Of a stretch of 64,000 nt of DNA, positions 1 through 47,286 are shown one piece after another. Positions within the stretch are counted from its first letter, which is position 1. The number at the start of each line of letters is the position of its first letter. The stretch spans positions 186,001 to 250,000 of the IMG/VR virus record IMGVR_UViG_3300028177_000001; one strand, given 5' to 3'. A program made the translations under genes and the position numbers. Under the pieces are notes generated by a model. That model saw only the letters and a list, made by a program, of their open reading frames with translations, did not search any database and was not told where the DNA came from.

Positions 1-1412
1 ATGATGCCCGTCAGGATGCCGAGCAGCTTCGGGGGAAGGTCGGCCACGTTGCGCACGCAGACGTTCATGGGGAACAGCAAGGGGACCTCATCGCACCCTT
101 CGTCGTCAATGCCGACGCCGATGATCTCGACCTTGGCCTCACGGGCGATGCGAATCTGGCGCCGGACCACCGCAGAGCAGTTGGGGACCCCGTCGGTGAT
201 GACGATGACCACCCGGTGACGCTCAGGACGCGTGTTCAGCTCCTGCAGAGCGTACTGGATGCCGTCGCTCAGGGGCGTTCCACCGCGTGCCTGCACGTGG
301 GCGAAGCGGGCCAGACACTTGTTGAGGGGCTCCTCCCAGTCCTTGAAGACGTCCAGGATGATCGACTGGCTCCGGTGGAAGCGAACCGAGCCGTCGTCAC
401 GGTACTGGTCGACGCTGCTACCCCAGCCGCCCCCACCACGCGGACCCACCACCAGGCACGGAGCGCCCAGCTGGTCCATAGAGGAGGCGATGGCCAGCGC
501 ACCACGAGCCACGTCCATCCGCGACCCGCACATCGACCCGCTCTCGTCGAGCACCAGAGCCACGGCCAGGGAGCACTCCTCCTTCTGGGTGGTCCGCCAG
601 TCGGGGCGCGTTGCCCGGCGTCCCGACTTGATCTCGACGTAGCTGCCTACCAGCCGACGCTCCGACAGGCCAGTGCCCTTGCGCACCCCGTGCGTGGTCT
701 TGGGCTTCCGAGCGCGAAGGAACTTCGCCCGCATCTGGTTCCGGAGGAAGCTGGCCTGCGACCGTACACTCTCCAGAATCGCCCGAGCAGCGGGCAGGCT
801 CGACGCAGGCCCGTTGACCACCACCACCTGGTCGCTACTCGGGTCGGAGGGCCGCCAGGCCTGCTCGCCCGTCTCGACATCGGTGTCCTCGGCGTCGAGG
901 GCGTTCTCCAGAGCCTTGCTGGCGTCCTTGAGGTCGGGCTCCTCGCCCTTCTCCGCCTCGCCCATCAGGTTCTCAGCCAGGTCCTTCATGTCGAGGGGGT
1001 CGGGCTCCGTGTCGTCCCCGCCTTCGCCCCCTGCCTCGTCTCCGCCCTCACCCTCGTTGGTGGAGCCGTCGGAGTTGGAGCCCTCCTTGTCGCTATCCTC
1101 CGGCTCGTCGCCGTCGCCGTCGGACTCGCCTTCCCCCTCGGACTCGTCGTCCTCGTCGGACTCGTCGTCCTCGTCGCCTTCGCCCTCTCCGGAACCCTCG
1201 GGGTCCCCCTCGGACTCGTCCTCGCTGTCCTCGCCACCCTTGCCGGAGCCCTTGCCCTCGTCGTCGGACTCGTCTTCGCCCTCTCCCGGCTCTCCGCCAC
1301 CCTCACCTTCGTTGTCCCCGTCCTCGTCAGAGGGAACCGGGGCCAGGTCCAGGTTGGAGCCGCTCAGCGCGAGGCCAAGGCGGGCGAGAAGTTCGGAGGC
1401 AGCAAGGCTCAT
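1..1412 (-). CDS. CobT-like VWA-domain protein, C-terminal half (runs off the window edge)
   Basis: Manual translation from ATG 1412: MSLAASELL, a long D/E/G-rich linker, then VALVLDESGSM (MIDAS DxSxS), RGGTPL and VIVITDG. Not in the ORF track because it is open at position 1. Confidence 0.85.
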   Translation of the reverse strand, partial: MSLAASELLARLGLALSGSNLDLAPVPSDEDGDNEGEGGGEPGEGEDESDDEGKGSGKGGEDSEDESEGDPEGSGEGEGDEDDESDEDDESEGEGESDGDGDEPEDSDKEGSNSDGSTNEGEGGDEAGGEGGDDTEPDPLDMKDLAENLMGEAEKGEEPDLKDASKALENALDAEDTDVETGEQAWRPSDPSSDQVVVVNGPASSLPAARAILESVRSQASFLRNQMRAKFLRARKPKTTHGVRKGTGLSERRLVGSYVEIKSGRRATRPDWRTTQKEECSLAVALVLDESGSMCGSRMDVARGALAIASSMDQLGAPCLVVGPRGGGGWGSSVDQYRDDGSVRFHRSQSIILDVFKDWEEPLNKCLARFAHVQARGGTPLSDGIQYALQELNTRPERHRVVIVITDGVPNCSAVVRRQIRIAREAKVEIIGVGIDDEGCDEVPLLFPMNVCVRNVADLPPKLLGILTGI

Positions 1413-3289: not shown

Positions 3290-4525
3290 TCAGTCGTCGC
3301 CGAGGGCCCCGCCCTTCAGGTGGGGGTCGATCAGCCGGTTCGCCGTCAGACGGGACTCAGAGTCCAGACCTTCGAGCCACGCTCGCATCCCGTGCTTCAA
3401 GAGGTTGTCCGGCGTCGTGGCCGAGTAGTGGAGCACGTCCTCGCACTCGTCCAGGATAGCGCAGAGGCTACGGTGGGTGAACTCGGCGTACAGGTCCTCG
3501 TTGTCGATGGCCTTGCGCAGCGAAGCCGTCGCGTGACCCAGCTGACCCAGCTTCTTCTCGCTGGAGTCGCTGAAGATGCTCGGGTCCGCTGCGGCCACCC
3601 CTGGGTACTTCGCCCGAAGGATCTTCCCCTCGTCGACCCAGTCCATGTACTTCGCTTCCATCTTCCGTCCCAGACGGTCCATGATGGATGCGTCGATCGG
3701 GTTCGCCGAACCCATGCGACCCCGTGCGTCCCCAGTGCCGCAGCTGTTCGCCGTGCAGATGAACTGCGTCCCCGGGAAGAGAGGAACCATGCCTCCGTCC
3801 GGACCCAGGATGCGTCCCGAGATCGAATCGGTCAGGATGCGGAACCACTCGGCCTGAGCCTCGTCCGCTCGGTCCACGTCGCTCAGCAACACCAGCGCCG
3901 CTCGTGCGACCCCGTCCCGACCCTCGACGCCGTTCACCAGCGCGTTCCAGAGGTGGCCGAACTCCCAGCTCGTCCCCTCCTTGTCGATAGCCCGCGTGTA
4001 GAACCACGGCGACAAGTCCGTACCCGGTCGGAAGGTGACCATCACCACCGGCTTCCGTGTGTACGCGCTGTATGCGTGGACGATAGCGTCCTTGCCTGTC
4101 CCCGGCATGCCCCAGATGAAGGCGTTCCGACCCCGAGCCATCGCCATGATCGCCCGGCTGAACACCCCGCGTGCCGCCCCCTGTGTGGGGAACTGGTAGT
4201 TCGAAGGCAACGGCAAACACTCCGACTCCGGCACCGCCCCGTCCACCGGGATCTGGATGCCCATCAGGTTTGCCGTCAAGCCCGTCGGCGCGGGCGCTCC
4301 CCGACGTACCGCTGCCGTCTTGAGCATCTTGAGTGCCTCGTCCGAAACCGTCGCGGCTCCAGCGTGGGCGCTCAGGTAGTCTGCCACCGTCAAACCGTGG
4401 GCCTCCATCAAGTGGCTCACCAACGCGTGACTCTTGTAGCCGCACTCAGCACACTCGACCCGAGCGTCTGTCACACTCAAGGTCTGCGTAGCAGCGGGGG
4501 CGGCACTCGTAGAAGCGGTCGTCAT
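3290..4525 (-). CDS. cobS: CobS/CbbQ/MoxR-family AAA+ ATPase with N-terminal C2H2 zinc finger
   Basis: CAECGYKSHALVSHLMEAH; Walker A GMPGTGKD; Walker B LLSDVD; sensor TANSCG; DASIMDRL; adjacent to CobT-like genes. Confidence 0.85.
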   Translation of the reverse strand: MTTASTSAAPAATQTLSVTDARVECAECGYKSHALVSHLMEAHGLTVADYLSAHAGAATVSDEALKMLKTAAVRRGAPAPTGLTANLMGIQIPVDGAVPESECLPLPSNYQFPTQGAARGVFSRAIMAMARGRNAFIWGMPGTGKDAIVHAYSAYTRKPVVMVTFRPGTDLSPWFYTRAIDKEGTSWEFGHLWNALVNGVEGRDGVARAALVLLSDVDRADEAQAEWFRILTDSISGRILGPDGGMVPLFPGTQFICTANSCGTGDARGRMGSANPIDASIMDRLGRKMEAKYMDWVDEGKILRAKYPGVAAADPSIFSDSSEKKLGQLGHATASLRKAIDNEDLYAEFTHRSLCAILDECEDVLHYSATTPDNLLKHGMRAWLEGLDSESRLTANRLIDPHLKGGALGDD

Positions 4526-4745
4526 GGTCGTGTTCTCCGTGGCGGCGATGCGCGCTCAAGGTTCCCTTCGAGTGCCTTACGTCCACTCCCCACCCAGGGA
4601 ACCCTATCAAAGTACGAATACCTCCCGTTCACTGTCCTGCCTCCCGTTCACTCTGCGACCCCGAACCCTCTCGTACAACCCCGCTCTCAATCACTCCGAC
4701 CCTTCCTGCGACCCCGCCGCAATCCCGATTTATTCTGCCCGTTTA

Positions 4746-5002
4746 GAGACACTGGGCGTAGACGTGGGGAGACACTGGGCGTAGACGTGGGGAGACACTG
4801 GGCGTAGACGTGGGAGAAACGGGCTGGTGGGTAGGTAGACGTGGGAGAAACGGGCTGGTGGGTAGGTAGACGTGGGTGGAGGACACTGGGCGTAGACGTG
4901 GGTGGAGGACACTGGGCGTAGACGTGGGTGGAGGACACTGACGTGGGGGAAGTGGAGTGGGGAGTGTTCGTAGACGTGGGGGAAGTGGACGTGGGGGAAG
5001 TG
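4746..5002. repeat. G-rich nested tandem-repeat array, core GTAGACGTGGG
   Basis: 8 full GTAGACGTGGG copies (4758, 4781, 4804, 4835, 4866, 4892, 4918, 4970) plus 2 GACGTGGG; unit lengths 23, 31 and 26 bp. Confidence 0.95.
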
Positions 5003-5104
5003 AAAACGGGGTCACTATACTTGTTCTCGCGGTGGAGCAGAGGCAGCGTGGGTAAGGGTCCACCCGAGGGGACACCGACTGGGTCTCATGTCTTCGAGAC
5101 GGTA

Positions 5105-5503
5105 CTACCCAGTTTCTGAAACTCCCATCAAGGGGGGAGTGTAACCGGGGCTGAAGATCCCAGAGAGTGACTGTATCCGTTCTACGAGGGACACATGGTC
5201 CGGTTTCTGGACACAGAGTTCCGGGGGGAGGATGTTTCCGGCTTCTTTGAGGACACTTACAGAGGCCGAGTAGACAACGAAGGGGATTTGTTCCCGACTT
5301 CTTTCGCGGACCTGTTCACAGACGAGTTTCCATTGCCCATGCAGGCCATCACAGACAACGACATCCGGTCGTGAGGCAAGTAGGGGGATAGCTTCCGAGG
5401 CAGAGGCCGCTTGCGAGACTCTGGACACAGTCGGGAGCCGGGAGAGCAGACGGGAGAGTGCTTTGAGGAGCAGGGGTTCATCCTCTACGATTAGGACATG
5501 CAC
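5105..5503 (-). CDS. single-domain response regulator (REC)
   Basis: VLIVEDE, DVVVCD (phospho-Asp), VYSA, QKP. Confidence 0.85.
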   Translation of the reverse strand: MHVLIVEDEPLLLKALSRLLSRLPTVSRVSQAASASEAIPLLASRPDVVVCDGLHGQWKLVCEQVRERSREQIPFVVYSASVSVLKEAGNILPPELCVQKPDHVSLVERIQSLSGIFSPGYTPPLMGVSETG

Positions 5504-6115
5504 GGGATTTACTCATGTTCATAGAGGACGAGGGTTCCCCGTTCACGGAGTTCCGCAAGGAGTCCGAGGTATCTGGGGTATCTGGAGGAGAGGCGACGAG
5601 AGAAAGAGAAGAGGGGGCCGAGACGGGAGACTCGTGCGAGGCCGAGGGGGAGGGGGACATCCTTCCATTGAAGGACGAGGGCGACAGGTTCCTGCCCATC
5701 AGCGAAGGTGGGGCCTTCCTGATTGGTCGGGATCCATCGGACGGTGCCAGACGGTGAGGTGAAGCGTCGGGCTCGCGGGGGTTGACCGAAGCACTCACTG
5801 TTCGTCAGGAGGGCTGGGTCAGACGGGATGAACAGAATGGAGAGAGACAAGTTGGGTAGACCTCTGGGGGAGGTCATTCTCTACCCTCTCGGAGAGAGGG
5901 TGGGACTCCTTTTCAGGAGGGCGACTTGTTCAGTTCCGCTCGGCAGAGTTTCAGGGCAGCTTCCGCTTCTACGGGGGCAGAGGGGGCGGCCAGTTTGGCC
6001 CACTCAGCCAGCGCACGCATTAGCCCATCCGTCTTCAGTTCCAGGGGGGCTCGAGTATCCGGTGCTGAGTCTGACGATGTTCTCTTCAAGGACTTGAGTG
6101 AAGATGCGGACATGT

Positions 6116-6760
6116 TCAGAGTTCTCCCAGGCCCCGGAGGGCAGCGACGATGGCACCTACTTCGAGAATGATCCGACCCACAAACCAGAAGATGCCTTTG
6201 ATTTGCGCTTCGATTTCCTTCTTGCCTTTCGGGTCCGATAGGCGGACGAAAAAGTTCTTGAGCAACGGCTTCGGGGAGAGCCCATCCCGAATGTCAGTCA
6301 TCAGAGTCGCGAGTTCAGTCAGGACAGTCATTTGAGCACGGACCAGGCGTCCGGTTTCATCCTCTGTCATGCGTCGCAGGTGACGTGCTTGAGCGACCTT
6401 GACAGCACGGACGAGCGTCGTGGAGTTGGTGACTGACTTGATGAGGAGGTCATCCGCCCCTTCACGGATCATCTCTTCTTCGATGCCATCGTGATACAGC
6501 GCGGTGAGGATGACGATGCTGTTCCCGGTGAGGGCGCGCACTCGTTTGACAGTCGTGCGACCATCATAGGGCGGGACCTTGAGGTCCAGGAGAACGCACA
6601 ACCATTCCTTTCGGAGCAGTTCCTTCGAAGCTTCGGAGTCGATTTCCTCAATGTGGACGAGAGTGATGCCGCTTCCGTCGAGGAGCTCCATGACTTCCTC
6701 TGCGTAAGACGCCTTGTCCTCCACCAGGAGTACAACCCCGGTTGTATTGTTTTCAGACAT
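6116..6760 (-). CDS. REC domain plus coiled coil plus C-terminal hydrophobic/TM helix
   Basis: VLLVEDK, VLLDLKVP, VILTA, GADDLLIK; C-terminus IFWFVGRIILEVGAIVAAL. Confidence 0.8.
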   Translation of the reverse strand: MSENNTTGVVLLVEDKASYAEEVMELLDGSGITLVHIEEIDSEASKELLRKEWLCVLLDLKVPPYDGRTTVKRVRALTGNSIVILTALYHDGIEEEMIREGADDLLIKSVTNSTTLVRAVKVAQARHLRRMTEDETGRLVRAQMTVLTELATLMTDIRDGLSPKPLLKNFFVRLSDPKGKKEIEAQIKGIFWFVGRIILEVGAIVAALRGLGEL

Positions 6761-7853
6761 CCGGGGGCCCCGCTTCCATTAGATTGAAGTACACTGTTGA
6801 ACCGCTCTGGCCGTCGCTCTCCATCCAGACGGCACCCCCGTGGCGTTCGAGGATTCGTCGACAGGTCGCCAGCCCCAGTCCGTTGCCGGGGATTTCCGAG
6901 AACCGATGCAGTCGCTTCGACGGTTTGAAGATGTCCTCCAGGTATTCCGGGGGCACGCCCATGCCGTTGTCCTCTACCGAGACGAGGATCACGCCCTCGA
7001 TGTCAGTCCGGCTCGCTTTGACTTCAAGCACGAGAGGGCGGGAGGGGTGTTGGTACTTGAGAGCGTTTTGAATCAGCTGGCGGAAGACCGTCTCGATGGC
7101 GTCCCGGTTCCCTTTGACGATGTAGCCTTGGCAGTTCAGCTTCGCCGTTGTTGCGATTGATGCTCGCACAGCGGGACAGCCTTTGTTCCCGTGCTGGCAG
7201 ACGTTCCCACAGGCCAGGCATTTCGCAGCCGCTTTGAGGGCTGAGTGCAGATGGAAGGAGGCACCGTCGCCGTCCGGGGTCTTCACGTAGGACAGGAACC
7301 CTTCGGTCACGTAGTCCATGCGGTCGATCCCTTGACGCAAGAACCCCAGCCACTTCTCCGCCTTCTCAGGGAAGACGACATCTCCCCGGGAGCAGTGTTT
7401 CTCGAAGTGGGACAAGGCCGCGCCGAGTTCCCTGAGAGGGGAGAGCAGGTCATGACTGGCCGCTGCCGCGAACCACTCCAGGTCCTCTTGCCGGCGGACC
7501 GACTCGGTGATGTTCATGTACACAACGCTCACGTGCTCGTCCCCCGCTGGGGCAACGATCACATTGTAAGTCTTAGGCAACCGTCCAGCATTCGCATACC
7601 GGTAGTGGAAGGACTGGGTTTCCCCAGACTTCGAGACCTCCTGTAGGAGCGGAATGAAGTCCCCCAAGAGCTCAGGCCAGGCTTCACTGGCCGGCTGGTG
7701 GTGCTTCTGGGCCATGTCCAGCCCCCACTGCTCCGAGAACGCCTTGCGGGCTTCCTTATTGAAATCGGCCATACAGGACTTCCCGCTGTCCAGGAGGTCA
7801 ACCTTCCAGACTACGATGGCAATCCCTACAGTCTTGAAGACCTGCTTATGCAT
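6753..7853 (-). CDS. sensor histidine kinase (PAS-like, HisKA, HATPase)
   Basis: H-box ASHDLLSPL, N-box LIQNALKY, G1 VEDNGMG, F-box IFKP, G2 GNGLGLA. Confidence 0.93.
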   Translation of the reverse strand: MHKQVFKTVGIAIVVWKVDLLDSGKSCMADFNKEARKAFSEQWGLDMAQKHHQPASEAWPELLGDFIPLLQEVSKSGETQSFHYRYANAGRLPKTYNVIVAPAGDEHVSVVYMNITESVRRQEDLEWFAAAASHDLLSPLRELGAALSHFEKHCSRGDVVFPEKAEKWLGFLRQGIDRMDYVTEGFLSYVKTPDGDGASFHLHSALKAAAKCLACGNVCQHGNKGCPAVRASIATTAKLNCQGYIVKGNRDAIETVFRQLIQNALKYQHPSRPLVLEVKASRTDIEGVILVSVEDNGMGVPPEYLEDIFKPSKRLHRFSEIPGNGLGLATCRRILERHGGAVWMESDGQSGSTVYFNLMEAGPPDV

Positions 7854-8271
7854 TAGGAGCAGCGGGGAACAGGACGTGTCCGATGCGCTGCAGTATCTCG
7901 GACAACTCGCGGAAACTTACAGGCTTTGAAAGAAAGTCGTCCGGCCCCACCCCGAGTTGTTCGGCCTGCGAACGGTCCGTGGGGTTGTTGCTGGTGGTGA
8001 GTATGATGACGGGAATCTTGCCCGCCCACGAGCTCTGAGACCAGTGGGCGAGAAACTCGAGACCGTCCATCACGGGCATACCCAGGTCCAACAGGATCAG
8101 GTCGGGGATAGGTTCCTGGCCAGAAAGGAGCCATTCCAGAGCCTCCTTCCCATGGGTTGCTCGGAACAGGGACACCCCTACACCTGCCTCCTCGAAACCC
8201 TCCAAGAGGATCTCGTGAAAGACGTCGTCGTCCTCTACGTGCAGAATGATTGATTGCCTTCCGAAAATCAT
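7846..8271 (-). CDS. CheY/Rcp1-like response regulator
   Basis: ILHVEDD, PDLILLDLGMPVMDGLEFL, IPVIILTTS, FLSKP; start placed at ATG 8271. Confidence 0.92.
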   Translation of the reverse strand: MIFGRQSIILHVEDDDVFHEILLEGFEEAGVGVSLFRATHGKEALEWLLSGQEPIPDLILLDLGMPVMDGLEFLAHWSQSSWAGKIPVIILTTSNNPTDRSQAEQLGVGPDDFLSKPVSFRELSEILQRIGHVLFPAAPNA

Positions 8272-8712: not shown

Positions 8713-9007
8713 CCTTCAGCTCCCTGACCAAGCCGCCGATGCCGGTGGTCACAGGCACGTTCTCCTGTTCGCAGTCGGGGTTCTTACAGGCCCAGTCGGT
8801 TCCCCAGAGGTAGGTCATGGGTAGGCGACAGCCGAAGCACGGAGGCGCACGGACAATCGACGCAGCGATGAAGACAGGGTCCGTGTTGATAGCAGCACCC
8901 GCGACGTGTTCTGTGTGCCCCTTAGAGCCGCAGATCGAACACTCGGAGACTTCCACAGCACTCCCCATAGAAAGCACCAGCTTCTTGCTTGCCATCAGGA
9001 GTCCCAC
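8705..9007 (-). CDS. Cys-rich (zinc-binding) hypothetical protein
   Basis: CSIC, CFGC, CKNPDC motifs. Confidence 0.55.
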   Translation of the reverse strand: MGLLMASKKLVLSMGSAVEVSECSICGSKGHTEHVAGAAINTDPVFIAASIVRAPPCFGCRLPMTYLWGTDWACKNPDCEQENVPVTTGIGGLVRELKDD

Positions 9008-9198
9008 TCGTGTGGGGGCTGCTGCTGTCTGGCCCAGTCGGCCACCACAAGAGCGGGCAACCAGATAGGCAAAGAGAGGACCCCGCCCAGGATAGCTCCG
9101 CCGACGATAGCTCCGCCACCCGCGACGGAACCTACCACTCCGGCCAGGCGGAAGACGCGCATGAGGGCGCGACGCTTGAGACTCGGACGCTTGGTCAT
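8995..9198 (-). CDS. small membrane protein
   Basis: Basic N-terminus followed by a Gly-rich hydrophobic helix. Confidence 0.55.
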   Translation of the reverse strand: MTKRPSLKRRALMRVFRLAGVVGSVAGGGAIVGGAILGGVLSLPIWLPALVVADWARQQQPPHEWDS

Positions 9199-11193: not shown

Positions 11194-11760
11194 TCAGCGA
11201 GGGGAAACCTCGTACAGTCGTAGCGCGTGTGCTCGCAGCTGGGTCAGTGCCTCGACCTTCCGGTCGATCTTCTCGATCGTGGACCCTCGGTCACGAACCT
11301 TGAGGTCGTAGGCTTCAATCATCGCAGGGAGGTGTTCGATGTAGTTGCAGACGAGGTGAAGCTCGTGGTGGCCGTCCCACACTACCGACCCGCCCTCTCC
11401 GGGCAGCGCCTGGGGGGTCTCGGCTTTGAGCCCCAGGGCTTCGACCAGCAGCTTCTCTGCCTGCTTCTCCTCGTGCCGGTCAGACCATGCAGTCAGCCGA
11501 ACCCGCTTGAGGTCCTCCGTGAGTTCCACGGCCCAGGTCAACGGGGCGGCGAGGAGACGGAAGTTCCGCAGGGCTGTCCTCTTCTCCAAGGCGTGCACGT
11601 CGCGGTTGAGCTCCGTAAGCATCTCGCGCATGCCGCTCATCTGCTCGATAAGCAGGTCTCGCCTTCGGGTGAGGCGGATCAACTCAGAGCTCACGGCGTT
11701 CGACCCCGGTATTCGGCCTATCGGGGACCGATACGATGTCCTCAAATAGGAGTGCTGCAA
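11194..11760 (-). CDS. coiled-coil hypothetical protein (true start probably internal)
   Basis: Heptad-rich ORF. Confidence 0.5.
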   Translation of the reverse strand: MQHSYLRTSYRSPIGRIPGSNAVSSELIRLTRRRDLLIEQMSGMREMLTELNRDVHALEKRTALRNFRLLAAPLTWAVELTEDLKRVRLTAWSDRHEEKQAEKLLVEALGLKAETPQALPGEGGSVVWDGHHELHLVCNYIEHLPAMIEAYDLKVRDRGSTIEKIDRKVEALTQLRAHALRLYEVSPR

Positions 11761-12326
11761 TGCGCAGATTCATGGCCTTGGCCGTCCTTTCTCTGGGTCT
11801 CTTGACCCTTCCGATTACCTCTGCGTTCGCAGAAGACCCCCCGGCGGACCCCGTCGCTGAAGAGGTCTCCGCAGAGACCCCCGAAGACGCACCTGAGGCT
11901 GACGCTGAGGAAGCTGACGCGCCTGAGGCTGACGCTGAGGAAACAGAAGCCTCCGTCCCCGAGACCGACGCCGAGGCTCTCGCCGTTGCCGTGTCTATGA
12001 TCGACGCTCTCAAGGCAGGGCAGTACCCCCTGGCTGCGGGTCTGTTCCTCACCCTTCTGGTGTTCCTGGTCAACCGGTTCTCTACCAAGGACCTGATCCC
12101 CGACAAGTGGGAGCCTGTTCTGGCCTTCGGAGTCGGCTTCGCCGGTGCTACCGGAACGGGTCTGGCTATGGGTACACCTGTGGGCGAAGCTCTGGCTGCG
12201 GGTGCAATCGCGGGCCTCGCCGGTGTCGGTGGTTGGCAGATGGCCGTCAAGGCGCTGGGCGACCTGAAGCCTTCCAAGAAGGAAGCTGACCCGGAGCCTC
12301 CCGCTGAGGAAGACGCCAAGGCGTAG
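11760..12326 (+). CDS. signal peptide plus acidic linker plus 3-TM holin-like membrane protein
   Basis: Signal peptide MRRFMALAVL...SAFA, EADA repeats, LIPDKWEPVLAFGVG resembling phage holin motifs. Confidence 0.55.
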   Translation: MRRFMALAVLSLGLLTLPITSAFAEDPPADPVAEEVSAETPEDAPEADAEEADAPEADAEETEASVPETDAEALAVAVSMIDALKAGQYPLAAGLFLTLLVFLVNRFSTKDLIPDKWEPVLAFGVGFAGATGTGLAMGTPVGEALAAGAIAGLAGVGGWQMAVKALGDLKPSKKEADPEPPAEEDAKA

Positions 12327-13346: not shown

Positions 13347-14022
13347 GTACGTCGCCGCATGCCAGCCCAGAACGGGCTCTACCCTGCGCCGCCACGGCTT
13401 TGTGCCTGTTCTGGGAGGGCTCTCGTCTATCGAAGTCGGCGGAAAGCTCTACAACGGCCACATACCCTTGAGGTCGTTCCCGTCTGAAGTCACTGTTGGC
13501 CGAACTGGCATTGCTACGGTCCGGGATCCCTTCAGCTGGATGGCCTCGGTGTACCACTGGATGCGGGCCGTCCCCCGAAAGAGCTTCGAACAACACCTGT
13601 TAGCCTGGGGGCAGGGCTCCGCTGAATGGTCGCGGGTGCTCTACGGCTGGACTCACCCGTGGGAGGTCTCGCCGCTGTTAGGCTCGCACGCCGTTGCGAA
13701 CCCCGGAGCCCCAGACTGGGCTTCGCAGAACGAAGGGTTCTGGACCATATCCACACGCTGGTTCCACGAAGGCTCTGCCCTGGTGTTGGATGCGTCCCGA
13801 CAGAATGAAGCGTGGGCCGAGCTCTTTCCCGAACACCGAGACGCTCTGATCGCGTGTGGGCGCAAAAACGGAACCCCTCGGCCCGTTGTCGCCGACCTCT
13901 ACACTTCGGAGCAAGAGGCGTGGGTCCGGGCGAGCGACGGAGTCTTGATGGAGAAGTTGGGCTACGACGGGCTGGGGGATATAGCCCTCCCCCACCTTGT
14001 AGGTTCGTGCCCCTCGCTCTAA
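13330..14022 (+). CDS. sulfotransferase-family protein
   Basis: PRTGST (5'-PSB-like), NGHIPL, TVRDPFSWMASVY (3'-PB motif RxPxxxxxSxY). Confidence 0.75.
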   Translation: MLITDKYVAACQPRTGSTLRRHGFVPVLGGLSSIEVGGKLYNGHIPLRSFPSEVTVGRTGIATVRDPFSWMASVYHWMRAVPRKSFEQHLLAWGQGSAEWSRVLYGWTHPWEVSPLLGSHAVANPGAPDWASQNEGFWTISTRWFHEGSALVLDASRQNEAWAELFPEHRDALIACGRKNGTPRPVVADLYTSEQEAWVRASDGVLMEKLGYDGLGDIALPHLVGSCPSL

Positions 14023-14324
14023 CAGGGGTCGGAAGGTCCTGGGTAGAACGACAGGAGAGCTGAGTCGTCCGCCGGGTCGTAGGTTGCCTGAACCGTGCCC
14101 CAGTCTCCGAAGAGTGCATGCAAGCGGTCGGCCTCCTCCAGTAGGTCTACACGGGTGCTGGTCATGTGGACGTGTGGGAAGTCAAGAACGCTCTCGAATC
14201 CGCGACCTTCCTTGAACTTGGTGGCCCCGTCCCCGGAATCCGTGGTGGTGAACCCCGCCCCGTTGAGACGGAGCACCCACTCTCGAATGCCGGGGTCAAG
14301 CGCCGCTACGAGCTTCGGGTCCAT
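14019..14324 (-). CDS. hypothetical protein (LDPGI...LNGAGFTTTDSGDG family)
   Basis: Motif resembles TYW3-like small phage proteins (from memory). Confidence 0.5.
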   Translation of the reverse strand: MDPKLVAALDPGIREWVLRLNGAGFTTTDSGDGATKFKEGRGFESVLDFPHVHMTSTRVDLLEEADRLHALFGDWGTVQATYDPADDSALLSFYPGPSDPC

Positions 14325-17393: not shown

Positions 17394-18593
17394 CTACTGG
17401 CTTCTTGCCAGGCGGAGCAGTGTCCGACGCTCAGGCGACCCCTTTGGCAGCACTGATGCGAGACGTACCAGGGAGCTCTTTTTGTCGGCCTTCCCGCCCT
17501 TTGCGTACTTCTCGGCGGCGTCCTTCCCCTTGTAGGGGCCTCCGGCCTTCCCCTCTGGGTTCTTGGCGTACCACTTCCCCTTCTGTTGCCAGGTGGACCC
17601 CGCCTTGCGAGCAAGATCCAGAGGCTGGTTCTCGTCTACGATGTTGTCCTGAAGGTCGGCGCGGAACACACCGGGCAGATCAAAGGCAGCGGCCAGGGCC
17701 TCTTCGATAGGAGCCTCGATCACCTTCACCTTCATCTTGCGATGAGGGTCGGCCAGAAGCAGGCCTGCATAGCGGTGGTGGCCGTCAATGACTGTGGCCT
17801 TCCCCGTCTTCGGATCCCGGGCGACCAGAATGGGAAGGTCGGGGAGCTTGTCGAACTCACCCGTGAGGAACGCCTTGGCGATCCCGTAGCTCTTTCCCGC
17901 CTTGATTTCAGCCTGGGATGCAATCAACTTGCCGACCTCGATAGAGTCGTCAGTGATCTCTGTGCCCTCCGACTTCAGCTTGTCGAACCACTGCTCCTGC
18001 GTGGTCTTGTCGGACTTCGGGTCCGCCCCCGCCGCCACAGCGGCTTCCCCCTTCTTGACGTCCTTGGGGTCGTCAGAAGCCAGGAGGTCCTTCACGGACT
18101 TGTCCATGATCTGGGGCATGTTGTCCCGGGTGATGCCCAGGTTTCCTTCGCATGCGGGAGGCCTCAGGTTGCAGAAGTCCGTGGCCTTGTCGATACCCTT
18201 CTGGAGCTGCTCCGCGACGTGGATCGCCCGGGACAGATCCCCTCGGGAAACTTCACCGTCTTCCCCTGCAATCACGTTCAGCTTGAAGCTTCCGCCGAGC
18301 GCCTTGACCGCCGGATGATCCTGGAACTGCTTGAGGTCCCCGTCGCTCGCCTTGGTGGTGTCCGCGAACTCCTTCTCATCCCGGAGCACGCCCTTGTCCT
18401 CCTTGTCCTTCTTCCCCTCGCCCTCGTCAGTCTTCTTGACCTGGTGGTTCTTCGGATCCGCGCCTGGGTGTTCCTTCAGGTACTTCTTGAGGGCCTCTGG
18501 GGTGGCGAAGTCTTGCGCCAGACGCAGGAGGGCCCTCCGGTCCTCGGACCCCTGGGGGAGGACGGCGGCGAGCTTGATAAGGGGAAGGCGCAT
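17394..18593 (-). CDS. ParB/Srx-like domain protein bracketed by repeated peptide tags
   Basis: LIASQAEI, PILV, VIDGHHRYA; IKLAAVLPQGSEDRRALL at the N-terminus and VRLASVLPKGSPERRTLL at the C-terminus. Confidence 0.75.
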   Translation of the reverse strand: MRLPLIKLAAVLPQGSEDRRALLRLAQDFATPEALKKYLKEHPGADPKNHQVKKTDEGEGKKDKEDKGVLRDEKEFADTTKASDGDLKQFQDHPAVKALGGSFKLNVIAGEDGEVSRGDLSRAIHVAEQLQKGIDKATDFCNLRPPACEGNLGITRDNMPQIMDKSVKDLLASDDPKDVKKGEAAVAAGADPKSDKTTQEQWFDKLKSEGTEITDDSIEVGKLIASQAEIKAGKSYGIAKAFLTGEFDKLPDLPILVARDPKTGKATVIDGHHRYAGLLLADPHRKMKVKVIEAPIEEALAAAFDLPGVFRADLQDNIVDENQPLDLARKAGSTWQQKGKWYAKNPEGKAGGPYKGKDAAEKYAKGGKADKKSSLVRLASVLPKGSPERRTLLRLARSQ

Positions 18594-18658
18594 TCCGTCT
18601 CCGATAGAGCATTCGTACCCAGGCGCGGGTATAGGTTGCCTACTGAAGAGGAAAGGCC

Positions 18659-18847
18659 ATGCCCATCTACGAATACAGGTGCAAGGACAAGAAGTGTGAC
18701 ACCGTCACGGAGATCATCCGAAGCATCCGAGAGGCGGACGAACCCCAGCCCTGTAAGAAGTGCAAGGGCAAGACCCAGAAGATGGTGTCGCAAACCTCGT
18801 TCTCGCTCCAGGGCGGCGGCTGGGCCAGCGACGGCTACGGAAGCTGA
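18659..18847 (+). CDS. FmdB-family zinc-ribbon protein
   Basis: MPIYEYRC..C ... CKKC ... SFSLQGGGWASDGY. Confidence 0.9.
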   Translation: MPIYEYRCKDKKCDTVTEIIRSIREADEPQPCKKCKGKTQKMVSQTSFSLQGGGWASDGYGS

Positions 18848-20062: not shown

Positions 20063-20341
20063 TTACTCACGTGAGTATAGCCCTGAACCTGACCCCTGGC
20101 GTGTGGTCTTCCCACCCAGCCAGTTCTCCTTCTTGATCCAGTCCCCGTTGCCCGAAGGGTCGGCGCAGTAGCACGTCCCGTTGATCTTCTGGTGTACGAT
20201 GGGAAAGCAGGCATCGGCGCAGAGGTGCTCCCGTCGGAGGACCTCTCGCAGATTATCGACTCGCTGGTCGTACTGATTGCCGCCCACGATCAGAGCGATC
20301 ACTACTGCGAGCAGGGTGAGAACGGCGAGGCCCTGCTTCAC
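20063..20341 (-). CDS. small membrane-anchored Cys-rich protein
   Basis: N-terminal TM; CADAC, CYC. Confidence 0.55.
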   Translation of the reverse strand: MKQGLAVLTLLAVVIALIVGGNQYDQRVDNLREVLRREHLCADACFPIVHQKINGTCYCADPSGNGDWIKKENWLGGKTTRQGSGSGLYSRE

Positions 20342-20997
20342 AGCTTGTCCCTTGACTGTATGAACGCCCGGTGCTTCTTCTCCAGAAGTTCGACTTCCTC
20401 GACCGCTGAGCGCAGGGCTGGGTCCACCGTATCCTGAATCTCAGTCACCGGCATTACAGGCACAGGCGGAGTGAACGGGCCTCGGACGACACCCCTGACA
20501 ATGAAGTCAAGAGGCGAGTCTGAGTCCCTCCACTGGAGGCGCTGGTTGGTCTTGTCTCCCCAGGCTCGGATCTTGGAGTGACTCGGACCTCTCTGGCGGG
20601 AACTCGAGCCCCTCTTGACAAGGGGGCTGTCGTCGTCCATTATCAGCGCCTGAATCCCCATGAACACACGGTGGGGGGTCCCGGTGATGCGCGTTCCGGT
20701 GATGCGCGTGATCTTTTTCTCGGAGAGGTCGGACCACCCCTTGCGGATTGTGACCTCGAGGGTCACCTCGAGACGGTCGTTCACAGCGAAGAGGCCCAGG
20801 TCCTGCTTGAGCTGGTCGATCATGACCTCAGGGTGCGCGAAGAACTCCAGCTTGAAGTGGGCCTCACCGGGAGCCGTCGGGGGGCTGCTTTCCAGCTGAC
20901 GCGCTGCCTTCCCCTTTCGCCAGAGGGCAAGATGTGCCAGGGCGGAAAGCACTAAGCCTCCCGACGTGAAGATCAGACTGGCAAGCAGGGGATCCAC
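20338..20997 (-). CDS. membrane-anchored hypothetical protein
   Basis: N-terminal TM; directly downstream of a promoter motif. Confidence 0.55.
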   Translation of the reverse strand: MDPLLASLIFTSGGLVLSALAHLALWRKGKAARQLESSPPTAPGEAHFKLEFFAHPEVMIDQLKQDLGLFAVNDRLEVTLEVTIRKGWSDLSEKKITRITGTRITGTPHRVFMGIQALIMDDDSPLVKRGSSSRQRGPSHSKIRAWGDKTNQRLQWRDSDSPLDFIVRGVVRGPFTPPVPVMPVTEIQDTVDPALRSAVEEVELLEKKHRAFIQSRDKL

Positions 20998-28327: not shown

Positions 28328-28413
28328 ACATCCTCCATAGGGAACGGACTACCGCTCGGAGGTCCTGCCAGACCCTGCTTCCCTCTTGCAGTTCTTGAGG
28401 TGCTTGTCGAAGG

Positions 28414-28487
28414 TACGCCCAGCAGGACTCGAACCTGCGACCCCCTGATTAGGAATCAGGCGCTCTATCCAGCTGAGCTATGGGCGC
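28414..28487 (-). tRNA. tRNA-Arg(CCU)
   Basis: GCGCCCA acceptor stem, D arm GCTC/GAGC, anticodon arm CCTGA-TTCCTAA-TCAGG, T loop TTCGAGT; CCA not encoded. Confidence 0.95.
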
Positions 28488-32673: not shown

Positions 32674-32746
32674 TACCCCTGCCAGGATTCGAACCTGGGA
32701 CCCTCTGCTTAGAAGGCAGATGCTCTATCCACTGAGCTACAGGGGC
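32674..32746 (-). tRNA. tRNA-Arg(UCU)
   Basis: GCCCCTG acceptor stem; anticodon arm TCTGC-CTTCTAA-GCAGA; T loop TTCGAAT. Confidence 0.95.
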
Positions 32747-46529: not shown

Positions 46530-46901
46530 TTACCGGGAACGGGCCCTCAGCTCTTTGATACTGCGGTCGGACAAGCGGAACAGACCCTGCACCGAGACGT
46601 ACAGGTTGTTCTGGATATCCCAGCGGAGGTAAGACACGTCGGTGAACGTGACCACGGGCCACCAGTACAACCGACCCAGTCCTTGCTCCAGAGCGCGGAA
46701 CGTGGTCAGGTCCGTTCCCGAAGGGGACGCAGGCCCATCCCAGGGATGCGTGTGTGCCAGACCCCCGATGGCCAGACGGTTCTCCCACATGACTTCCCAG
46801 AGGCCTCGGCTGTCGGGCAGCGAGCCTCCAGTGCGTCCTGCGGGCTCGTGCCAGTGAAAGGGCTCGCCGAGCTTGTCGAAGACGAGTGCGGTTTCGATCA
46901 T
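46530..46901 (-). CDS. JAB/MPN metallopeptidase
   Basis: N-terminal E (MIETA), AHTHPW...PSGTD (HxH-x7-S-x2-D). Confidence 0.85.
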   Translation of the reverse strand: MIETALVFDKLGEPFHWHEPAGRTGGSLPDSRGLWEVMWENRLAIGGLAHTHPWDGPASPSGTDLTTFRALEQGLGRLYWWPVVTFTDVSYLRWDIQNNLYVSVQGLFRLSDRSIKELRARSR

Positions 46902-46902
46902 G

Positions 46903-47286
46903 TCAGTACAACCTGTAGACGACCTGGGAGAGAGCTTGGTCCGCCTCTTCCCCTCGGTCGCTCTGGAGATAGGCGAGGATGGCGGCCACGAGGCGGTTTG
47001 AAGTCCCCTTCCCGGTCCACGGGCCGATTCCCTCAGGGTAGCCTCCCTCCGTCATGGAGGAAATCCTCACGATGTTGGCGACATCGTAGCCCGCCTCTTT
47101 CAGGCGATGTGCCACATGGTTGCCCCTGAGACCCGGCAGGCGGTGGTCCAGCATGACCCCGTCGAAGGACAGGATGTCGTCGATGGGAACCTCGTCCCAG
47201 CGCTCGGCCACCACGTACTCATGACCCTCGGGCCAGTACTTCATGTCCAGCAGCCACGGCTGGTCTTCGATAATCAGAATCTTCAT
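46903..47286 (-). CDS. atypical receiver (REC) domain protein
   Basis: ILIIED, VMLDHRLPG, ISS. Confidence 0.7.
   Translation of the reverse strand: MKILIIEDQPWLLDMKYWPEGHEYVVAERWDEVPIDDILSFDGVMLDHRLPGLRGNHVAHRLKEAGYDVANIVRISSMTEGGYPEGIGPWTGKGTSNRLVAAILAYLQSDRGEEADQALSQVVYRLY

Follow-up and report, generated by a model that had tools for sequence, protein, structure and literature searches.

The Cph1-Rcp1 and BphP-BphR pairs, the FixL-family kinases of PAS-DHp-CA architecture (together with YF1 and SB2F1) and the regulators WspR and EutV are the described systems closest to a two-component cassette found on the minus strand of a phage contig. The cassette lies in a 64,000-nucleotide stretch of DNA (the window), which corresponds to bases 186,001-250,000 of the 288,255-bp IMG/VR record IMGVR_UViG_3300028177_000001, and encodes a stand-alone receiver (RR1), a histidine kinase (HK), a receiver with a helical tail (REC-tail) and a 66-residue protein (sp66). 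It combines a phosphotransfer core of the classical kind with an output pair that is unusual and restricted to phages.

As in the Cph1-Rcp1 and BphP-BphR pairs, a single-domain response regulator is encoded beside the kinase. The closest solved kinase by sequence is the kinase domain of RpBphP2 (PDB 8f71, E 7e-23), which shares the H-box pattern SHD(L/I)xxPLR. The best PDB sequence matches of RR1 are the bacteriophytochrome response regulators 6xvu and 8avv, with Rcp1 (1i3c) and RcpB (1k66) also matching, so that the label Rcp1-like given to RR1 in a first-pass annotation of this DNA is a fair one. The phage system differs, however, in that its kinase lacks the PAS-GAF-PHY sensor and the bilin site and has one short PAS domain of about 105 residues, its regulator gene lies upstream of the kinase gene, and a tailed second receiver and sp66 are added. 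HK shares its three-domain architecture with the FixL-family kinases over the full length (Foldseek E 1e-19, about 390 aligned columns), the best full-length matches being the PAS/LOV kinases YF1 (4gcz) and SB2F1 (8a7f), whereas the identity to YF1 and SB2F1 is 18-20%, the place of the LOV cysteine is occupied by C, T or M in the phage family and no haem-ligand histidine is conserved. In REC-tail the last receiver helix runs on into a long stalk as it does in WspR and EutV, where the stalk mediates phosphorylation-dependent dimerisation or oligomerisation, but the GGDEF or ANTAR domain is replaced by a 95-residue helical tail with a hydrophobic end helix.

In the usual view, phages exploit the sensors of their host or use simple switches made of a single protein, for example repressors, arbitrium and VqmA-type receptors. 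The one receiver-fold domain described in the jumbo-phage survey of Iyer et al. (2021, PMC7824862) is the divergent cREC, defined there by a tie to NAD+/ADP-ribose enzymes and by never accompanying a histidine kinase. The receivers described here are likewise receiver-fold domains of a jumbo phage but differ from cREC in being translationally coupled to a kinase and in matching the classical Pfam model, and their membership of cREC was rejected on account of that coupling. Exact-phrase literature searches on phage-encoded kinases, regulators and two-component systems gave nothing relevant, with no paper on a phage-encoded kinase and regulator set, and no other virus-encoded histidine kinase was found to be characterised in the literature searched. 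Two-component genes are listed, without analysis, among the auxiliary genes of Nitrosospira phages in a preprint.

The first-pass annotation had called intact kinase and regulator sets uncommon in phages, and our searches agree. Any HK-like match was found in 46 of 50,697 phage records, many of them unannotated fragments or cellular-looking, and none covered 80% of the query. Among the BFVD structures, 29 matched HK at E<=0.001, mostly from Ectocarpus/Feldmannia and other giant eukaryotic viruses with a few from uncultured phages; a weaker BFVD match was found in Agrobacterium phage Atu_ph07. A credible precedent is Microcoleus phage My-WqHQDG (OR578706), in which an overlapping kinase-receiver pair lies among replication genes. 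This and the other viral kinases (Atu_ph07, uncultured Caudovirales and giant viruses) differ from HK in sharing at most 27% identity, over the core only, and in being multi-sensor or hybrid proteins of 545-1186 residues, none of which comes with the RR1, REC-tail and sp66 set. The record MW462191 ('Bacteriophage sp.'), which carries a PleC-like kinase, was not accepted as a phage precedent, as its neighbours, a glutamine-synthetase adenylyltransferase and aminopeptidase N, look cellular.

The contig itself is that of a jumbo phage and neither a bacterial chromosome nor an island. A large terminase subunit (TerL; phrog_2, 80 bits), a portal protein (phrog_16240, 110 bits) and a head-maturation protease (phrog_18299, 35 bits) were all found on it with PHROGs, the combination by which we assign it to the Caudoviricetes, and further PHROGs matches include topoisomerase II, ribonucleotide reductase, the thymidylate synthase ThyX, helicases and a tRNA nucleotidyltransferase. 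A major capsid protein was not identified on the contig. The sequence is an IMG/VR virus record with a CheckV completeness of 79%, and we class it as a marine jumbo phage (288 kb sequenced). The terminase, portal and protease genes supply the confirmation of viral origin that the first-pass annotation had asked for and exclude the chromosome or island that it had named as the finding that would overturn its reading. Four more metagenome runs, all marine or seawater and each from a different study, contain identical contig pieces bearing the cassette; the cassette is therefore no assembly artefact and its habitat is marine.

Organization and catalytic features of the cassette

The RR1 gene (7846-8271, minus strand as are all cassette genes; 141 residues) and the HK gene (6753-7853; 366 residues) overlap by 8 nt, as do the HK and REC-tail (6116-6760; 214 residues) genes, and 2 nt separate REC-tail from sp66 (5913-6113). 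The ATG of RR1 at 8271 is preceded by the Shine-Dalgarno sequence AGGGAG and sp66 has its own ribosome-binding site, GGGAGA. Four minus-strand open reading frames (ORFs) had been reported between 5105 and 8271 as one operon, and all four are present. The operon assignment is well founded for RR1, HK and REC-tail, given the 8-nt overlaps, and extends to sp66, which had been overlooked; it does not clearly apply to the ORF at 5105-5503, here called RR4. By comparison with related contigs, the conserved unit is RR1-HK-REC-tail-sp66, since RR4 has no detectable homologue and is absent from those contigs. In the whole genome, a PF00072 scan gave three receiver matches, all in the cassette region, and a single kinase was found; a second, weak HATPase_c match belongs to topoisomerase II.

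HK is predicted to be a soluble PAS-DHp-CA kinase. The AlphaFold2 model (predicted local distance difference test, pLDDT, 87.5) places the PAS domain at residues 12-114 (nt 7512-7820), DHp at 116-190 (nt 7284-7508) and CA at 198-360 (nt 6774-7262). The predicted phospho-acceptor H134 (codon 7452-7454) is found in the H-box SHDLLSPLR, which aligns to 8f71 and lies in the modelled two-helix DHp. Together with H134-D135, the residues N263, D295/G297/G299, F309 and G323/G325/G327 are invariant in an alignment of 35 kinases and in the four phage-family members. The CA domain has the N, G1, F and G2 boxes and matches HATPase_c with 77.9 bits (cut-off 26.4).

The PAS region shows the 2-beta/4-alpha/3-beta topology in the model (strands 12-17, 27-31, 80-86, 94-102 and 107-114; helices within 33-76) at a pLDDT of 87-97, and the full-length Foldseek alignments to PAS kinases agree with this fold. 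Topology, Foldseek alignments, HATPase_c score and invariant catalytic residues together bear out the earlier description of HK as a PAS histidine kinase. Sixteen residues in the PAS half are invariant in the four family members (F6, W16, D22, N32, E41, W43, G44, A55, W59, L62, Q71, E72, G77, F82, Y96 and Y112), and no invariant cysteine or histidine that could serve as LOV-adduct or haem-ligand residue was found among them in residues 1-115. Neither a GAF nor a PHY domain was found by Pfam or in the model; HK is therefore not a phytochrome, the single PAS being directly followed by DHp. A cysteine-rich insert (C-x2-C-x3-C-x6-C-P and one more cysteine) was observed in the CA domain at residues ~212-240 (window ~7134-7220). 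It is absent from the three homologous kinases, hence lineage-specific, has low confidence in the model and could be a metal or Fe-S site.

Both RR1 (Response_reg 71.5 bits) and REC-tail (37.4 bits) score above the Pfam cut-off and carry the acidic pair, aspartate, threonine and lysine of a receiver. In RR1 these are E13/D14, the acceptor D62, T92 and K116 (followed by P117), all of which are invariant in three lineages. REC-tail retains E14/D15, the acceptor D59 (codon 6584-6586), T86 and K108 in its receiver domain (residues 8-125). Thus the earlier statement that all the proteins have intact catalytic motifs is correct for RR1, HK and REC-tail; RR4 is below the Pfam cut-off. As had also been stated, no DNA-binding domain was found by Pfam in any cassette protein. 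The PADLOC defence models gave marginal matches only (SduA, 19.6 bits on a receiver domain; PDC-M43B, 14.6 bits on the CA domain), and a defence-system identity was rejected as these reflect generic domain similarity.

In the AlphaFold2 model of REC-tail (pLDDT 83), the receiver leads into a stalk helix (113-161); a pair of short helices comes next, and the last helix spans about 190-212 (nt 6125-6193). The Kyte-Doolittle maximum over 19 residues of this last helix is 2.08, against 1.87-1.99 in homologues (three lineages), and a hydrophobic C-terminal helix is kept in five lineages. We consider that it probably inserts into a membrane. The earlier label REC-coil-TM thus agrees with the predicted layout (receiver 8-125, helix 113-161, hydrophobic helix 191-212), with a putative membrane span read from hydropathy. 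The top Foldseek matches, WspR (3i5a and 3bre) and EutV (6ww6), are receivers with a helical stalk, and the sequence matches of the receiver domain are mostly REC-GGDEF proteins. The C-terminal 95 residues, in contrast, have two relatives only among 1.84 billion representatives in an exhaustive HMMER search. Look-alike searches in the ESM Atlas with this C-terminus and with sp66 returned nothing usable; an Atlas cluster of 234-residue REC-only proteins, in which Verrucomicrobiota are commonest, has a shape similar to REC-tail (TM 0.72), and no sequence relation to it was detected.

The fourth gene encodes sp66, for which no Pfam, PHROG or Atlas match was found. L025, L003 and L043 each have a homologue directly 3' of REC-tail and L042 has part of one, and ORFs of this kind, 60-70 residues long and overlapping or abutting the REC-tail stop, are present in every related contig. 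The residues L26, T28, A34, A39, A46-P47, C57 and L61 are invariant in the family. A complex prediction of REC-tail with sp66 gave a median of 0.29 against a mark of 0.32, which counts neither for nor against a complex.

Conservation of the module and variation of the acceptor aspartate

The full-length relatives of HK all come from a few marine metagenome contigs and are P0002 (42% identity; carried by L002, L024 and L025), P0003 (37%) and the kinase of L003 (38%). The remaining matches are limited to the DHp-CA core and do not exceed 36% identity. L002/L024/L025 and L003 have the same gene order, RR1-HK-REC-tail-small ORF, with identities of 43% for RR1, 38-42% for HK, 31-54% for REC-tail and 31-54% for the module as a whole, and the GC content is 52% in L002/L024/L025, 58% in L003 and 62% in the phage described here. 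The related contigs have further genes in common with this phage and also carry either phage-type NAD-salvage genes or PTH2 and Cpn10, and the genes that flank the module differ in every one of them. In L025, a nicotinamide phosphoribosyltransferase and an NMNAT/Nudix protein (4300-7795) follow right after the module.

A maximum-likelihood tree was built from the kinase cores of the four family members and the 31 nearest other kinases. In it the four phage-family kinases group together with 100/100 support, set apart from the others by a stem 1.67 changes per site in length. The closest sequence in 185,579 species genomes was 30% identical over HK residues 119-358 only, and none was full-length. 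The phylogeny that had been proposed as a check on the cassette thus sets HK apart by a long stem, and the species genomes gave no close cellular relative. A recent, decaying host capture, which the first-pass annotation had named as a finding that would count against it, is excluded by the retention of the cassette among diverged phage lineages. Judged on these comparisons the module is old, phage-specific and under selection. The family comprises five lineages.

A scan of IMG/VR viral contigs with the HK and the HK plus REC-tail alignments confirmed no further contig, and as few peptide patterns were used this is a weak negative. Two metagenome contigs, L026 (424 kb) and L027 (197 kb), carry HK-like sequences of 27-29% identity and were set aside as generic kinase and regulator similarity; L030, a contig from a human-gut metagenome assembly, was also among the HK-like matches.

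A natural variant of the module was found through the C-terminal tail of REC-tail. One of its two relatives, P0199, occurs on 16 contigs, including L043, a scaffold of 338,860 bp that has several genes in common with this phage. This lineage has REC-tail followed by the small ORF but neither HK nor RR1 within 10 kb on either side. In L042, a contig of 963 bp, REC-tail likewise has no HK or RR1 beside it, within a contig that offers 236 nt upstream. The REC-tail proteins of both L043 and L042 have glycine at position 59 while T/S86 and K108 are kept, whereas the three lineages with an adjacent kinase all keep the acceptor aspartate. The sp66 homologues still adjoin REC-tail in the lineages without an adjacent kinase, in part in L042.

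This pattern is the best available evidence, on comparative grounds, that HK acts on REC-tail. Since other phage lineages retain the REC-tail/sp66 pair with no kinase beside it, it also suggests that the pair is the effector core, which in this phage has been placed under sensory control; in the lineages with G59 the pair would work without phosphorylation. As the adjacent kinase and the acceptor aspartate go missing together, these lineages offer a natural experiment on the passage from receiver to pseudo-receiver.

The L043 scaffold also carries a DUF559/MTES_1575 endonuclease-like gene and several GIY-YIG (SegE-like) paralogues (11586-12134, 17925-18830, 13354-14238 and 20113-20673), the latter related to g301 of this phage (G000:261168-261815). 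These genes point to mobile homing endonucleases in the phage clade.

Possible roles of the proposed circuit

With moderate confidence we read the cassette as a phage-owned phosphotransfer circuit with the REC-tail/sp66 pair as its effector, rather than as a piece of host DNA. With its N-terminal PAS domain the soluble kinase would sense a cue inside the cell, and it would then autophosphorylate on H134 and serve both of its cognate receivers as phosphoryl donor, at D62 of RR1 and D59 of REC-tail. Phosphorylation of REC-tail would alter the pairing of its stalk helix, as in regulators of the WspR and EutV type, and this change would switch the activity of the C-terminal helical module that ends in the hydrophobic, probably membrane-inserting helix. 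This module would act jointly with sp66 through protein-protein contact and not through DNA binding, probably at the membrane. RR1 would form a second branch, either as a diffusible single-domain output or as a phosphate sink that shapes the kinetics. Candidate downstream targets are a membrane process, the phage sigma factor and lysis.

More tentatively, the circuit may be autonomous with a new response-regulator output, made of a tail-anchored receiver and a dedicated partner of 60-70 residues, that is kinase-controlled where the aspartate is present or a pseudo-receiver where glycine replaces it, and that gates a membrane-associated step of infection by the state of the host cell. The REC-tail/sp66 pair is a candidate for a new output class of response regulators. 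A clade-conserved kinase-receiver module would show that large lytic-type phages keep a multi-step sensory pathway of their own, and with one soluble kinase, two receivers and one partner of 66 residues it would be a small, defined system for the study of virus sensing inside the host.

Several observations weigh against the phage-owned circuit. The cassette region was found in no RNA run, the matching runs having given DNA contigs only. HK reaches no more than 11.7-15 bits with Pfam HisKA, whose cut-off is 26.9, and the PAS domain has no Pfam match at threshold, and the partners in HK to RR1/REC-tail phosphotransfer are assigned from adjacency only. As for the membrane helix, it contains conserved R/K and E residues, the C-terminal part of the REC-tail model has a pLDDT of 61-72, and the helix could instead be part of a bundle of helices and not cross a membrane. 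The pattern of aspartate and kinase draws in part on the short L042 contig, a kinase may be encoded elsewhere in the L043 genome beyond the 10-kb flanks, and the REC-tail tree leaves the change from aspartate to glycine as one or two events.

The first-pass annotation had offered host-signalling interference and a phage sensing circuit side by side, and on this choice a phage sensing circuit is favoured, although it is not proven. Under interference, the bare receivers would drain phosphate from host kinases, or HK would phosphorylate host regulators, so as to reprogram host transcription. The absence of a DNA-binding output fits such a role, as does the nature of RR1, an ordinary single-domain receiver of the Rcp1/BphR type with generic matches to many response regulators, and there are precedents for phage proteins that disturb two-component systems of the host, such as PIT4 of Pseudomonas phage LSL4 (PMC10714779). 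Against it, the HK clade sits on a long stem from every cellular kinase, and as the cellular relatives reach about 36% identity at most, over the core only, nothing points to HK as a mimic of any one host kinase; moreover three lineages retain the kinase beside both receivers, with translational coupling, and the acceptor aspartate is lost exactly where the kinase is not adjacent, which points to an insulated internal pathway. Because of the conserved synteny, the deep phage-only kinase clade and this loss of aspartate, a self-contained phage circuit is favoured, and interference appears unlikely. Recent or decaying capture of host genes, or a bacterial contig or island, is scarcely credible: RR4, a degenerate orphan receiver with low GC content at third codon positions (GC3, 0.59), could be a decaying copy, but the terminase, portal and protease genes place the contig among viruses, in keeping with its IMG/VR record, the core catalytic residues are intact throughout, the module spans 31-54% identity across phage lineages whose GC content ranges from 52 to 62%, and no close cellular relative was found in the species genomes. 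The capture reading is rejected on these sequence comparisons.

Two further proposals concern what the circuit controls, and both appear improbable. In one, the tail-anchored REC-tail and sp66 would gate a holin, spanin or exclusion function according to the energy or redox state of the host, and so time lysis or superinfection. PAS kinases often report redox or energy state, the hydrophobic C-terminal helix of REC-tail is kept in five lineages and a membrane-like ORF of 67 residues with a glycine zipper (8995-9198) lies 0.7 kb upstream; Pfam and PHROGs, however, recognised neither an endolysin nor a holin or spanin among the neighbours, and the flanks differ in each related contig so that no conserved tie to lysis genes exists. 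Lysis timing had been given earlier as an example of what a sensing circuit might do, and nothing specific in its favour was found. In the other proposal sp66 would be an anti-sigma-like protein or adaptor, captured or released by phosphorylated REC-tail or RR1, that controls the sigma-70-family factor of the phage. Precedents such as PhyR-NepR and RssB exist for the control of sigma factors by single-domain receivers that act through small partners, this phage does encode a sigma factor with regions 1.2, 2, 3 and 4 (G000:180502-181506), and sp66 is small and always paired with REC-tail, yet it resembles no known anti-sigma family in Pfam, PHROG or Atlas searches.

Neighbouring genes and other features

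Two consecutive GC-rich hairpins lie just 3' of the sp66 stop at 5859-5904 (minus strand). They were found by a scan for terminator-like sequences (match at 5880-5904) and an RNA fold of 5504-5915, and are likely to form the 3' end of the RR1-HK-REC-tail-sp66 transcript as judged by position and fold. There is no U-tract after them on the minus strand, and the fold of the 412-nt spacer between sp66 and RR4 is unremarkable (z -1.6).

RR4 (5105-5503, minus strand; 132 residues, GTG start) lies about 410 nt further downstream of sp66, beyond the two hairpins. It scores 28.2 bits against Response_reg, under the Pfam cut-off of 30.2, and aligns to receivers over beta1-beta4 only (residues 1-81; hhalign 92.8%). 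No homologue was found in a protein search or in any related contig. It had been listed as a response regulator of the same operon; as a divergent, sub-threshold orphan absent from all relatives it probably stands outside the conserved operon, and is possibly a decaying, lineage-specific extra.

A fourth receiver had also been placed at 46903 ahead of a JAB gene. The adjacency was found as described: an ORF at 46903-47286 (minus strand) is directly followed by a JAB/MPN-like ORF at 46530-46901 (minus strand) with the motif HTHP...S..D. The receiver, on the other hand, is weak (Pfam 14.8 bits, hhalign 88.6%), though the acceptor-aspartate position is filled in the stretch VMLDHRLPG, and the Prok-JAB match of 24.3 bits is below its cut-off of 25.

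Eight direct copies of CCACGTCTAC (minus strand), spaced by 23-31 nt, were observed at window 4758-4979 in one intergenic region, between RR4 and the gene at 3290-4525. The number expected by chance is 0.1, and elsewhere the 288-kb genome has only two copies; the arrangement resembles an array of iterons or operators. The gene at 3290-4525 (minus strand) encodes a CobS-like AAA_5 ATPase (phrog_249, annotated 'porphyrin biosynthesis') with a borderline Ros/MucR zinc finger (25.2 bits, cut-off 25.4). A CobT-like VWA protein is encoded further downstream of the cassette at window 3-1412 (minus strand), and a gene of 395 residues and of no known kind lies between the VWA and CobS-like genes.

On the other side of the cassette, the ORF at 8995-9198 (minus strand) has no family match above threshold; with its glycine-zipper-like hydrophobic stretch it is possibly a small membrane protein. 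The sigma-70-family factor (334 residues, minus strand; also L049:1003-2007) is encoded 5.5 kb before the first base of the window and about 11 kb from the cassette, and the signalling module could act on it. An Rfam scan of the window returned tRNAs only, and the phage tRNA genes observed there are Arg-CCT (28412-28487), Arg-TCT (32674-32746), Met-CAT (58815-58890) and Glu-CTC (59930-60011).

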